Shown: positions 4,642 through 12,754, counted from the first letter of the stretch. The stretch is 64,000 nt of DNA from Salpingoeca rosetta (GCA_033442325.1 JAWQFM010000015.1:719494-783493); one strand, 5' to 3'. Program-made: numbers and translations. The notes: generated by a model not told the origin, from the sequence alone.

Positions 4642-6903
4642 CTACTTGAGGAAAGGAGCCTGGTCGATCAAGGCGGCCATGACGGTGGCGGCTTTGCCAG
4701 CCGCAATTTTGCGAAAGAGCTTGCGCTTCTGGCCGTGCGAGAGGTCTCCGGCGCCCGCCTCGCCCAAAACGGCAGCAAACTTGCCGTCGTTCTCAACCTT
4801 TGCCTTCTTCAGCTGCTCACAAACTGCTGGGTTGCGTCCTTCCTTGTCCAGCGCCAACTCGCTCACGTCGCTCACGGCCTTCATCACAGGCAGGGCTTTG
4901 ACCGGGCACACGTCTGCCGCACGAGCCATGCGCACGGCCTTGAAGAAAGGGAACGCCTCCATCTCCAAGCCCTCTGTCTCGCCCACGAGCGCCACACAGT
5001 CCTCCCGCACCTGCGGGTACGTGTACAGCGTAGACTTCATGTGCACGGTGATGCCGGGTGGCGCCTGGAAGGTGACGGCCATGTGGTCACCAACCGCAAG
5101 CTCGGCATCCTGTCCAGCCGTGGCGTCATCAGACGAAGCTGGCTTGAAGAAGTACGGGTTCATGTACTCTGCCACGTCCGAGCGCCCATAGGCGGAGGGG
5201 TCAATCCGTTCCAGACCGCAGCTGCTCTTCTCGATGATCACGCGGCCAGCGCGGGCGTCGACGGCCTTGGTGGCAACAATGACGTCGTTGAGGTGGTGCC
5301 CGCCGCACACGCCAATCATGCCAATGTAGTCGGGCTCCAGTGCGGTGATGACCTGGCCCACGTGGATGCCGCACTCGATGGGGCCTTGCAGCTTGGCCAC
5401 GAACCGCGTCACCGTCAGGTGATACGCCTTCCCGCCTTTGGTCATGACAAAGTCAAAGCGGTAGAACGCGTTGGCCGCCTCCTTGTACCCGGCGCCAAAG
5501 CAGTAGCCAAGGGACATGGGGTGGCGGCGAATCGACGCAATACTGTCAAAGGCGCGGTTCATGGCCTCAAACTCGTACGGTTTGGCGCACACAATCACGA
5601 ATCTAGAGGAAAGTCGGGAGAGGGGGAATGGTCGGCATGCGTTTGTGAGGGTGAGCAAATGATGGGTGAAAGAATGCGGAGCAGCCACCAGAAAGAGGAG
5701 GCGGGGGCAGCACAAGGCGAGTGCTTGAGTGGGAAACGCGGGGTGATGAGCCATGCACACACAAGCACCTCACAAGCACCTCACAAGCACCTCACAAGCA
5801 CCTCACCGCGTGTGCGCCTGTTCGGGAAGGCCATTTGGGCAGAGGCTGTCCAGGAGGGCGCCAACGGTCTTTTTGCGGTCTGTCTTGGCGTTAGCGGCGC
5901 GCCAAAGGTGGATGAGGTGGGCCATGACATGGGCGCCCCCGAGCGTGTCCGTGACAACGTTGAGGAACGGCTCCATGCCGTCTTGGTCGTTGATGAAGGT
6001 ATGCTTGTTGAATGGCGGCTTGTGCTGCTTCAAGACGCCAAGAAGCGTGTCGGCCGTCGTCACAGGGGCATCCAAATGCTGTCCCAGGTAGGCGGCCACC
6101 TTCTTCACGTTGTCTTCGCTCAGGTTCTTCACCTCATTTTCGATAAACTCCATCAGCAACTCTGGCGGCGCCGTCATGAGTGGATGTTGCTCGGGATCGT
6201 GCGAGGCCCTGAGCAAAGAGCGGAAGAAGGGCGGGGATTGAGGGAATGGATCGTGTGTATGCATGTGTGTGTGTGTGTGTGTGTGTGTGTGTGTGTGTGT
6301 GTGTGTGTGTGTGTGTGTGTGTGTGTGTGTGTGTGTGTGTGTGTGTGTGTGTGTGTGTGTGTGTGTGTGTGTGTGTGGGTCTGAGGGTTGGGGGTTGCGG
6401 GAGCAGCAAGTGCCAGGATAAGAACAGCGATTACAGACCAGAACAGGAAAACGTCATGACAGCTCAACATCCCCAACAACAACAGCCGCTCCGCGAGACA
6501 CTCATGTAGCTTACTGCTCTTCCATGTCACTTGCGGTCGAGTCATCCGAAGGCTCTCTGGAGACTTTGGCGGCTTTGCTGGTGTCGGCGGGCTCTCTTGA
6601 CAAAGGCTGAAGGCCAGAGGCGGCCTGCCATTCTTTCAGAAGGATAAAGAGCTTGTGGGTTTCGCCTAATTGGGCCTTGACAATGTCCTTGAGCGGCTGC
6701 ATGTCGCTCTTATTGCTCACATATGGCAAGGAATGCTTTGGTGGGCAGTTGGATTGGAACTTGTGGAGGAGGTCCTTGCCCTCGTTCACATGCGAGAAGC
6801 TGCACGCCGCAGCGACGCGCATGACTTCCTGTGGTGTCAAGTACCACACCTCCGTTTGGATGTCAGCGAGCACGCTGTTCTTGTTGCGCTTGGGGTCGCT
6901 CAT
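4642..6903 (-). CDS. Tandem death-fold-like domain x2 + PNP_UDP_1 (MTA/SAH-nucleosidase-like, immune-effector type) protein, 583 aa; exons 6903-6515, 6208-5807, 5602-4642
   Basis: Both introns are phase-2 GT-AG and the exons sum to 1752 nt (584 codons). PNP motifs: VIVCAKPYEFEA, IGMIGVCGG..LNDVIVA, GLEMEA, VMKAVSD. Exons 1 and 2 each encode a mutually similar ~85-90 aa helical domain. Confidence 0.85.
5760..5806. repeat. 11-bp tandem repeat (CACAAGCACCT)x4 overlapping the intron-2 donor of the PNP gene
   Basis: Seen directly; the minus strand reads (GTGAGGTGCTT)x4. Confidence 0.9.
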
Positions 6904-7399
6904 TGTTGCAGGGTGGGGCAGTGTGGTGTGGAGATGGAAGCTGGAAAGCGGGCAAAACAAGGTGGTGGGAGATGCAAATGCGTGGACACCAAAATGAGGC
7001 TTTGCGCTTGGCGGCTTTGTGCTTGGCCAGGCTCAGCTTTTTTTTTTCTGGCTTGGCATGTTGTTGCTTGCTTGAAGAATGTTTGCTGCGAAACTTTGCA
7101 ATGTTCTTGAAATTTGGAAAGTCTTCTTTTGGATTTGGCAAGGGAGGCGCCCGATGTCAAAAATTAAAAAAAGGGAGAGCGCTGCGACGAAACCCAGCAT
7201 GCAGAAGCAACACACCAAACACGAGCAACACTCCATTGTGACGCAACCCAAATGCTGAGCCTTGTGCCATCCACAAGCACAAGAGCACAGACCAACAACA
7301 ACAGGCCAAAGGCCAACCAGGCATCAAGCAAGCCACATTTACATGTAACTCGTCGCTCCTCGCCAAACTCATTTCTCAGACAACAAGCCGACACCAACT
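6904..7399. promoter_or_regulatory. Probable bidirectional promoter between the PNP effector and the Roco gene
   Basis: 496 bp between divergent ATGs (6903 minus, 7400 plus), free of microsatellites. Confidence 0.55.
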
Positions 7400-10300: not shown

Positions 10301-12754
10301 ATTGGCTTTGAAGGCAACCCCTTGGTCTGTCCGCCGGCGCACATCGTCGTCCACAGCCGCGCCATGACGTATGCGTACCTGCGTGCCGTTTCACAGGGGT
10401 CTGAGTTGCTGACGCGATCGCGGCTGGTGTTCATTGGTGATGGCGGTGTTGGCAAAACCACCCTCAAGACGGCTCTGCTCATGCTCCACAGTGCAGACCG
10501 CGCACACGTGCTCAATGTGGTCAGGCAAGCCATCAAGAAGGCGTTCAGCAAGTACACAGAGGCCGACTTCCGCGAATGGGTGGACCATGACCTCAACCCC
10601 AGCGACCAACCTGGTTTCTTTGACCAGTGCTGCCAAAAAGCCAAGGGCATCACGGGGAAACTGTGGCTTAAAAGCCCGGACGACAAGCTGCGAGCTTGGT
10701 TTGGCGGAGACGCTGGTACGGCTCAAGCAGAGCAAATTGTGGATCGCATGCTACAGGCACGCCAATTCATTCTCGCAAGTGGTGCAACTGCACCACAGTC
10801 GCCACCAGGTCAAGGCGATGCACCACCTTTCGAGCCCTTGCTCTACATGCCGCACGTGTGGACGGAAGGGGTCGAAGTTGACCACTGGGATGCCCACGAC
10901 TTTGAAATCTGGGACTTTGCCGGGGAGCTGGAGTTCTTCCCCACCCATGAGCTCTTCCTCGCCTCACACATGGCCGTGTATTTGCTTGTGTTTGACGCGT
11001 CCCAGGGCTTTGATCACGCCCTTGCGCGCGTGTGTCTGTGGCTGGAGCTGCTACGCACATGCACGCCTCCTGCGCTGGGCCACAACCACGACCACGTGCA
11101 AGTCCGCCTTGTTGCCACAAAGGACGTGTCGTTTTCACTCGATTACTTCCGATCTGAGGTGAAGCATCACGCAAGCAGCTGCTTTGACCTTGGGCCAAAG
11201 TGCTACAGAATCGAATACACCGAAGCTGATGGTGGGGACCTGATGGACCTTGACACGGAGCTTGCCAGGCTTCGCACCGAAGGCGTGCCGTACTTTCACG
11301 TGCCAACAGGGCTGACTGATATCAAGAAACACATCCAAGAAATGGCGAGAGCACATGCGACGAGGGATTGGCCAGTGGTCAATGTGAGCACCATCGACTG
11401 GAAGCACAACCACCCCGAACTTGCCGTTCTGTTTCTGCTTCACACGGCCGTCATTTACCCTGTGCCGGGAAACCCGTCCATGATCGTGCTGGACCCGATG
11501 GTGTGGCTTACCAAGCTACTGTCAGCGCTGCTGCACCCCTTGCATGGGCTCAGCTTGTCCTTTGATGCGGCTTCGCCCCAAGCGTCGTCATCCCAGATAC
11601 ATCTGCCTGCTGTGGACACCTCCCATGTGCTTAGCTCACTGGCCCAACGTGACTTGCACATTCCGCAACAGCAAAGACACCTGCTGCTGCCGTTCCTGTC
11701 CTCATTCAACATTTGCTTCTCAGTGAACACAGCACAAACGCTCTACACGTTTCCGTCCCTGCTCCCACGCCGCGACGTTCACCCAGGCATCATCACTGCC
11801 ATCCACAATACTGTGCCTGGGCTCGCAGCCTCGCAGCGTGTCGTGTTGGGCCGCCGGCTGCAATGCTTTGAGGAGCACGAGTGGCTGCCCCCAACAGCCT
11901 GGCCGTTGGTTGTGAAAGAGCTCTTTGCTGCTGTGAACGAAGCAGGTGCAACGCCGCTTCACTTGAGCGCAGGCATATTCATCGCACAAGTGGATTTGGC
12001 AAACTACATCGTTGCAAGCCTGACCCTTCTCAAGCATCGGCGCTGCGTTGACATTGTTGCTGTCGGCAGTCAGTCTGAGGTCCTTTTGCACACGGCCATG
12101 CTGTGTGTTGTGAAAGTGTTGCGCGACCACTTTCCTTCCCTCCACCTACAAAAGCGCTGCTTGATGGTGGCATCGCAACATGACCACGATCAGGAGCAAC
12201 ATGCCGTGCTCCAATTGAGCATCGTATCCCACTCCGTGTACACGGAGAAGAAGGCGGTGGACCCTCAGGATGTCCTGCAGCAGCTCCCAACATCAGATAG
12301 TGGTCCACTGTCCACCACATACGCCCAGCGCCTTCGGCAGTTGCTGACAGTCGAAGATCACAGTGACAGTCCACCAATTCGGCGCTGGGATGCTCACTGG
12401 GTGTGTTTGTTGACTGATCCCAAGCTGGTGTCCGAGACAAACATCCCAAAGGCGAAACAGAATGCCGAGACCAGGAGCATGTTTGCTGATGTCTGTGAAC
12501 AACTTCTTCACCTCAGCGAGCAGGAACGAGTGGTGCTGAGTACCCACTGCGGTCTGCATAACAAACCCTTGGATGGGTCGAGCATGGTACTTGCGCTCAA
12601 ATCAACCTGTCCAATCGGGTCAACGGTGCCCTATCTCAGCGAGGACAGCGATCTGCAGCCCCTGCACGACGCGATCGAGCGCAGGATTGGGCATGAGCAC
12701 ATAACCTGTGTGATCATTCGCGAACGCCAAGCAAAGCTGAAGACACTTCCATGA
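7400..12754 (+). CDS. Roco protein: RI-type LRRs - ROC GTPase (with SAM-like insertion) - COR-like - C-terminal death-fold-like domain, ~1124 aa; exons 7400-7500, nine 84-nt exons (starts 7795, 8048, 8401, 8668, 8860, 9128, 9340, 9784, 9981), 10237-12754
   Basis: 28-aa LRRs such as LDGNRIGTEGVRVLAPVVGSMDSLQELE. P-loop RLVFIGDGGVGKTTL, switch I WTEGVEV, G3 IWDFAGELEFFPTHELFL, G4 LVATKD. COR-like motifs IVLDPMVWLTKLL and YTFPSLLP. All introns are phase 2; total 3375 nt. Confidence 0.88.

Follow-up and report, generated by a model that had tools for sequence, protein, structure and literature searches.

Nucleosidases of the PNP family joined to adaptor domains are known from animals and from bacteria. 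Rousset et al. (bioRxiv 10.1101/2023.01.24.525353) described Death-PNP fusions in animals, with the PNP of the sponge protein DDAN being toxic in E. coli and acting as an ATP/dATP nucleosidase, and Kaur et al. (PMC8195603) described bacterial bDLD3-PNPase proteins and the principle of the effector-associated domain (EAD), without mention of choanoflagellates. Richter et al. found Death and CARD domains in none of the choanoflagellates studied, Lopez-Escardo et al. list Death as gained when animals arose, and according to Yuen et al. the choanoflagellate Salpingoeca rosetta has NACHT domains without bona fide NLRs. Here we compare with these systems a pair of divergent S. rosetta genes, found in a stretch of 64,000 nucleotides (contig C15:719494-783493, from a genome assembly of 55.4 Mb), which we refer to as the window. 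PTSG_05953, on the minus strand, encodes two copies of a small domain, here called X, followed by a PNP nucleosidase domain; PTSG_05954, on the plus strand, encodes a Roco protein with leucine-rich repeats (LRRs), a Roc GTPase domain, a COR-like region and a C-terminal X. An earlier reading of the DNA sequence (the original prediction) had proposed that X links the two proteins as sensor and effector. With some reserve, our results incline us to the same view: the pair would be a two-gene sensor/effector module, and X, a sequence family restricted to its lineage, a homotypic adaptor common to NTPase switches (Roco, STAND and the Rad50-like ATPase) and to effectors (the PNP enzyme and a putative membrane protein). 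None of the publications in our literature search names these loci.

The start codons of the two genes lie at 6903 (minus strand) and 7400 (plus strand), leaving the gap of 496 bp reported originally, and both reading frames are intact. We reproduced exactly the translations and coordinates given for the three X copies. The C-terminus of the Roco protein (Roco-X), for which 25 identities in 85 positions to the N-terminus of the neighbouring protein had been counted by hand, aligned by BLASTP to the first X of PTSG_05953 (X1) with 25/86 identities, one gap and an E-value of 3e-17. The second copy, placed by the original prediction in exon 2 (X2), matched X1 at E 9e-9 and Roco-X at E 7e-4. Smith-Waterman scores compared with 2000 shuffles gave z 23.4 for Roco-X and X1 (0/2000), z 11.8 for X1 and X2 (0/2000) and z 5.1 for Roco-X and X2 (3/2000). 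The similarity among the X copies is thus far above chance.

The X-X-PNP mRNA exists, with all three exons joined. Three runs belonging to three studies (2011, 2017 and 2024) gave spliced cDNA contigs, about 1.87 kb in length, that skip positions 5603-5806 and, past 6208, go on to read exon 1 at its 3' end (..DSTASDMEEQ). Our comparison of the contigs covered 4645-6260, beside a (CA)n repeat at 6264-6377, and the joint between exons 1 and 2 is visible there only as a loose end. Since the contigs carry exons 1 and 2 together with the PNP exon, the objection that the X exons might not be joined to the PNP exon falls away. The 5' untranslated region of the PNP gene takes up at least 81 nt of the intergenic region (contig records reach 471 nt past 6208), within which the two genes presumably share a promoter (6904..7399). 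Separately, one RNA run (X20) had C>T in 3/4 raw reads at position 4697, which lies close to where the PNP coding region ends on its 3' side; at this depth an allele and an error look alike.

The linkage between sensor and effector recurs in the genome. Exactly four PNP paralogues of the X-PNP type were found; all four carry X, and all four adjoin a gene encoding a Roco protein with X. In the window, a class A Roco (LRR-Roc-COR-X) stands head-to-head with an intact X-X-PNP gene. On contig C4, a class B Roco (Roc-COR-TIR-X) precedes an intact X-X-PNP gene in tandem on the same strand. At the two loci on contig C18 the Roco is again of class A and head-to-head with its neighbour, in which either a Ty3/gypsy element parts the exon for X from that for PNP (C18b) or a truncated X is fused to a truncated PNP (C18a). 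By an X profile search for co-occurrence in S. rosetta, four loci pair Roco-X with X-PNP, each locus thus having the adaptor both on an NTPase and on an effector with a gene of its own, and the partners vary elsewhere. The PNP domains are 47-52% identical over three independent loci, while the Rocos beside them form two classes, between which similarity is just P-loop-level and alignment hardly possible; a single en-bloc duplication of the pair therefore does not explain the linkage. In the tree of X domains the X1s of the PNP proteins group together, as do the X2s (95/92 support), so the tandem X-X-PNP arrangement is older than the split between the window and C4 copies.

The C4 locus (C4:945335-948864) is annotated as a single 1593-aa fusion protein, PTSG_02681, which is probably two merged genes, because the Roc-COR-TIR-X frame runs through a hydrophobic tail to a stop codon and a separate ATG (MPTRREINSAFAKIK..) is present for the effector, comparable to that of the window gene (MSDPKRNKNSVLADIQ...). 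This ATG just precedes the first helix of the effector's X, a helix that the annotated intron removes. On C18, the Ty3/gypsy element that splits the X-PNP gene of C18b (C18:589442-594510) encodes gag, a zinc knuckle, reverse transcriptase, RNase H, integrase and a chromodomain, and the gene there, PTSG_06833, is annotated as PNP alone. PTSG_06809 (C18a, C18:494843-495600) is a 205-aa remnant in which the truncated X is joined directly to the C-terminal half of the PNP domain.

X had been described as private to the pair, which proved wrong: about 15 copies, spread over about 12 genes, are present in S. rosetta. Of these, 14 were identified by profile searching of the genome, and a hidden Markov model (HMM) search of 1.84 billion protein representatives added the fifteenth. 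X forms the C-terminus of five Rocos: three of class A (in the window and two on C18) and two of class B (PTSG_02681 on C4 and one on contig C25), the latter with Roc, a strong COR-A, a TIR_2-like region and X. It is N-terminal in two STAND-type proteins: PTSG_12916, of NPHP3_N/NACHT type with a TANC1-type winged helix, and the product of a gene at C15:320701-323171 (here C15:323k), STAND-like with a TANC1-type winged helix (wHTH) and WD40 repeats in an Apaf-1-like layout. The C15:323k gene is broken downstream by an N-run. X is also N-terminal in PTSG_07399 (contig C19), an ABC ATPase that is Rad50/SbcC-like and has long coiled coils; this type of NTPase is more familiar from bacterial defence than from the death-fold proteins of animals. 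Finally, the small protein PTSG_09016 carries X, and its C-terminal tail is hydrophobic and by eye looks membrane-spanning. X thus occurs at the C-terminus of Roc-COR proteins, at the N-terminus of STAND and STAND-like proteins, and ahead of enzymatic effectors. In animals, a death domain (DD) stands at the C-terminus of DAPK1, itself a Roco-family protein, and a CARD at the N-terminus of Apaf-1.

The HMM search of the 1.84 billion representatives gave no credible X match outside S. rosetta. Four candidates were rejected: P0008, P0009 and P0011 are low-complexity repeat proteins, and P0010 matches just the first two helices of X. Beyond S. rosetta a single credible relative of X turned up, an intronless 408-aa frame in a transcript-like Logan contig of SRR24908159, an unrelated public run (L033:317-1543); the frame has an X-like N-terminus (hhalign 91%, E 1e-6) and a related PNP domain; an X-PNP fusion therefore occurs in at least one other organism. 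X was not found on three contigs (L034-L036) of metagenomic PNP relatives.

The earlier suggestion that X is death-fold-like is supported by structure prediction. An AlphaFold2 (AF2) model, built on an alignment of 13 paralogous S. rosetta X sequences, had pLDDT 94 and pTM 0.83. In an exhaustive comparison with 48,161 PDB representatives, nine chains reached Z >= 8, every one of them a death effector domain (DED; Z 8.1-9.8), the best being the DED of PEA-15 (Z 9.8, root-mean-square deviation 2.3 A over 82 residues), with MC159 vFLIP, caspase-8 DED2 and FADD DED also among them. The next 40 matches are almost all PYD, DD or CARD domains. PEA-15 DED was also the top Foldseek match (probability 0.90, TM 0.60, with weak E-values), and the top match in a shape search of the ESM Atlas was a DED-containing cluster; the Atlas feature search with X gave no meaningful match (score 0.75). 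X is accordingly predicted to be a death-fold closest to DEDs, a reading favoured because the list of structural matches is pure and the architectural contexts fit.

The effector candidate carries the motifs of a PNP enzyme. QGP, GVCGG, EMEA and KAVSD are kept among eight relatives, with M-E (in EMEA) and S-D (in KAVSD) invariant in 8/8 aligned. We take EMEA to be the ribose-binding Met-Glu and SD to hold the catalytic Asp, matching them by motif from what is known of MTAN and DeoD rather than by direct alignment. By this matching, it is the Asp that was mutated in Cap17 (D472A) and DtcC (D353A). The PNP domain also matched PDC-M60C, a PADLOC model of defence-candidate PNPs, at 5e-8 to 5e-10. 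For the ESM Atlas model of the protein, structural neighbours were exclusively PNP_UDP_1 (TM about 0.6), comprising MTAN-like, Cap17-like_N+PNP, TIR-PNP and fungal NLR-type PNPs, and feature neighbours included EAD1-PNP and bDLD3-PNP clusters.

Taken together, the locus is best read as an effector-associated domain system, in which activation of the switch recruits and concentrates the effector, and it looks like a pre-animal sensor/effector module for cell death or immunity. The LRRs would sense a ligand, and nucleotide-dependent dimerisation or oligomerisation of Roc-COR would cluster the C-terminal X domains; the clustered X domains would nucleate assembly of the tandem-X effector, which would bring the PNP domains together in an active state. 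The active PNP might then cut the N-glycosidic bond of an adenine nucleotide (ATP or dATP, as Cap17-like PNPs do), leading to growth arrest or cell death. PNP superfamily enzymes are obligate oligomers. Beyond the identity of the domains, we infer every step of this scheme.

A number of observations weigh against the module, and several of them bear on other explanations of the locus. The two C18 loci, which lie about 90 kb from each other and both include a beta-propeller (ACSF4-type) gene, arose as segmental duplicates in inverted orientation, so that the linkage counts as independent at three loci only. Both of them, out of four PNP loci, are decayed, from which it follows that the module can be lost. 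By tree and by identities, Roco-X is no closer to the X of its neighbour than to other X copies; the pair therefore bears no pair-specific sequence signature, and the idea that the two are recent copies of each other was rejected on the same grounds. This lack of pair-specific similarity would fit an arrangement in which X is a death-fold adaptor and the neighbours are not direct partners: both would dock on a separate hub, for example PTSG_12916 or the C15:323k protein, as parts of a larger signalosome, and their adjacency would reflect co-regulation through a common promoter. The spread of about 15 X copies over several NTPase types would also suit a hub, as would the Roco-X of C25, which has no X-bearing neighbour within 10 kb. 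We consider a hub unlikely, since 4/4 PNP loci adjoin a Roco-X gene and 0/4 adjoin an X-STAND gene, and since the linkage spans two unrelated Roco classes and two orientations.

For the fold of X, the points against are the following. DSSP assigned five helices and a conserved 17-residue loop to the model, not six helices; Z-scores of 8-10 can be reached by chance for helical bundles, as the comparison program cautions; and the alignment behind the model held just 13 paralogues. A Pfam search with the 13 X copies at E <= 10 returned no match, including DED, Death, CARD, PYD and bDLD, and a PDB sequence search with the X profile at E <= 10 returned none. The last helix (consensus G-x-x-H-x-x-C-x-L-I-x-x-W-Q; a conserved S-D-L-x-P-L, part of the conserved loop CPP..PYLS..SDLxPL, precedes helix 4) was searched for the charge triad or RxDL motif of DEDs, and neither was found. 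Because both the RxDL motif and a profile match are missing, we keep X outside the DED family proper and assign it to the death-fold superfamily as a sequence family in its own right, new and with a predicted DED-like shape. We also list here the complex prediction for Roco-X with PNP-X1, whose score of 0.01, obtained with an uncertain partner fold, speaks neither for nor against binding.

That low score, for all the weakness of the prediction behind it, would agree with X acting in cis, in regulation, autoinhibition or localisation, while the gene pairs persist through joint duplication. So would the low-complexity linker of about 55 aa between X1 and X2 of PTSG_05953, unlike the rigid tandem DEDs of caspase-8. 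Three things make a role in cis distinctly improbable in our view: the known role of the death-fold class is homotypic assembly, the same small domain sits on otherwise unrelated sensors and effectors, and the existence of two unalignable classes of partner Roco speaks against simple co-duplication.

The nucleosidase assignment is open to criticism as well. The original prediction placed a PNP_UDP_1 domain after X2; the match of this window copy to PF01048/PNP_UDP_1 stays below the Pfam cut-off (17.8 bits against 25.1), which the 54%-identical C4 paralogue exceeds (30.5 bits, E 3.1e-7). The AF2 model of the PNP domain, from four paralogues, was poor (pLDDT 44) and was not used for searching, and when the PNP alignment was run as a profile against the PDB, the DeoD matches obtained were only marginal (E about 1). 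One could ask whether the enzyme is a metabolic or signalling nucleosidase, acting on methylthioadenosine or S-adenosylhomocysteine (MTA/SAH) or in nucleoside salvage, with the module serving physiology or development, for example in response to bacterial cues. MTAN and DeoD have a fold of this family, an MTA/SAH nucleosidase-family cluster heads the Atlas structural rows for the protein, and NCBIfam gave weak SAH nucleosidase matches. Among the NCBIfam models, however, no housekeeping model was significant, unlike the defence-candidate PNP model, and the fusion to a predicted death-fold, the linkage to Rocos, a neighbouring TIR-NACHT-WD40 gene and the birth-and-death pattern with disruption by a retroelement are typical of conflict genes. 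We give the metabolic explanation very little weight.

A last point against the module concerns the Roc domain, whose G4 motif reads TKDV and not [NT]KxD (TKTD in a C18 paralogue), because of which GTP binding or guanine specificity may be altered. Together with the C18 paralogues that are truncated or split by the Ty3/gypsy element, this atypical G4 could be taken to mean that the pair is a functionless remnant, decaying or mis-annotated. We find this hardly credible for a locus with intact frames, kept motifs and a PNP mRNA correctly spliced in three studies. The sensor/effector module thus remains our preferred reading. A broader proposal goes with it, which we put forward tentatively and would not bet on: that the logic leading from an NTPase sensor through homotypic death-fold assembly to an enzymatic killer was already in place in the unicellular ancestors of animals, the Rocos of S. 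rosetta being sensors for innate immunity or cell death, on which the tandem-X nucleosidase would nucleate into DED-like assemblies and so deplete ATP.

The features of the two genes are collected in Table 1. PTSG_05954 has many short LRR exons between 7400 and 10237, with LRRs clear in Pfam, followed by a single large last exon (10238-12754). Between G1 and G3 its Roc domain carries an insert of about 150 aa (~10470-10900, plus strand) that is kept in the class A paralogue on C18 (..DFREWVDHDL..GITGKLWL..) and has no Pfam match. The COR-A match (PF16095), weak in the window, has E 0.009 in the 39%-identical C18 paralogue and 1e-14 to 1e-17 in the class B Rocos of C4 and C25. Directly downstream of the Roco gene and convergent with it lies a gene (13748-23236, minus strand) with two TIR_2 regions, NACHT, pentapeptide repeats and WD40 repeats, so that three immune-type genes stand in one row. 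Long (CA)n/(GT)n microsatellites occur in many introns and intergenic stretches of the window (4470-4640, 6264-6377, 8170-8260, 9440-9640 and elsewhere).

Table 1. Features of the PTSG_05953/PTSG_05954 pair, in positions counted from the first nucleotide of the window
Feature	Position	Strand	Basis
PTSG_05953 coding region, X-X-PNP, 583 aa	4642..6903	-	exon set translates exactly to the annotated protein; spliced contigs, three studies
PTSG_05953 exons	6515-6903, 5807-6208, 4642-5602 (stop codon included in last)	-	exact translation
Intron 1, 306 nt, GT..AG, holds (CA)n microsatellite	6209..6514	-	boundaries checked; contig loose end at 6208
Intron 2, 204 nt, GT..AG	5603..5806	-	joint 5602->5807 in contigs of runs X4, X5, X6
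X1, first predicted DED-like domain of the PNP gene	6622..6876	-	E 2.3e-41 to X profile
X2, second, more diverged predicted DED-like domain	5896..6159	-	groups with X2 of the C4 paralogue, 95/92 support
PNP_UDP_1-family nucleosidase domain	4645..5601	-	Pfam E 0.0023; PADLOC PDC-M60C 5e-8; Atlas structural neighbours
PNP motifs	QGP 5380-5388; GVCGG 5299-5313; EMEA within 4951-4968; KAVSD 4867-4881, putative catalytic Asp509	-	invariant alignment columns
Divergent intergenic region, 496 bp	6904..7399	.	start codons on both sides; shared promoter presumed
PTSG_05954 coding span, LRR-Roc-COR-X, 1124 aa	7400..12754	+	annotated protein; Pfam LRR_4/LRR_8/LRR_6 and Roc
Roc GTPase domain	10418..11179	+	PF08477 E 1.3e-8, 35.6 bits vs cut-off 27
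Roc motifs	P-loop GDGGVGKTT 10436-10462; G3 DFAG ~10910; G4 TKDV ~11114-11128	+	sequence motifs
COR-A-like region, weak match	11480..11764	+	PF16095 E 0.061; UniProt name 'COR domain-containing'
C-terminal X of the Roco protein, predicted DED-like	12476..12733	+	AF2 pLDDT 94; Z 9.8 to PEA-15 DED

The family described here, divergent in sequence and predicted to be DED-like, belongs to the best-developed choanoflagellate model and takes the positions held by the death-folds of Apaf-1, NLRs, DAPK1 and caspase-8, and it is coupled to a type of effector, PNP, for which ATP depletion has been shown with immune proteins of bacteria and of a sponge. Profile-based domain censuses miss adaptors such as X, and structure prediction recovers them. 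If X:X coupling holds, S. rosetta would offer a genetically tractable unicellular system for the pre-multicellular origin of death-fold signalosomes and of regulated cell death, and Roco GTPases would gain an immune-type role. Were X to form death-fold signalosomes, the view of death-fold adaptors as an animal innovation would be overturned.

Compared with known systems, the arrangement recalls that of FADD and caspase-8: the predicted X fold is nearest to DEDs, and two adaptors stand ahead of the effector enzyme and one on the upstream protein. In contrast to that system, X has neither a DED profile match nor RxDL, a long flexible linker lies between X1 and X2, the effector has nucleosidase in place of protease character, and the upstream protein is a Roco GTPase and not a receptor adaptor. 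With DAPK1, PTSG_05954 has in common a Roc GTPase (its COR being putative) ending in a death-fold (predicted in the case of X), but it lacks kinase and ankyrin parts, has N-terminal LRRs, carries a DED-like rather than a DD-like domain, and has its effector encoded in a separate adjoining gene.

On the effector side, X-PNP resembles DDAN, Cap17 and DtcC in having a predicted death-fold N-terminal to a PNP_UDP_1-family domain, a catalytic Asp motif and Cap17-like Atlas neighbours, a likeness drawn from sequence and model; it differs in that X is an unannotated sequence family of its own, occurs in tandem and belongs to a unicellular host. The fungal NLR PNPs likewise tie a PNP effector to an NTPase switch, and PNP-TPR and PNP-DUF7580 clusters are among the structural neighbours of the S. 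rosetta protein. In the fungal proteins, however, the PNP is fused in cis to NACHT or NB-ARC, whereas in S. rosetta it is a separate gene, presumably recruited in trans via the death-fold. The bacterial bDLD3/EAD systems (PMC7159879, PMC8195603) are alike in placing one adaptor on an NTPase and on a separate effector of the same locus, with PNPase and TIR among the effectors; here the pair is eukaryotic and contains introns, the NTPase is a Roco with LRRs, and X has no bDLD or EAD Pfam match. The original claim that no Roco-nucleosidase system had been described stands for the Roco sensor in a unicellular holozoan, but it needs to be narrowed in view of sponge Death-PNP (10.1101/2023.01.24.525353) and bDLD3-PNPase (PMC8195603). 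The adaptor-coupled logic of NTPase and effector and the fusion of a death-fold to PNP are known already; the Roco sensor, the split-gene arrangement, the DED-like sequence family and the occurrence in a unicellular relative of animals are new.

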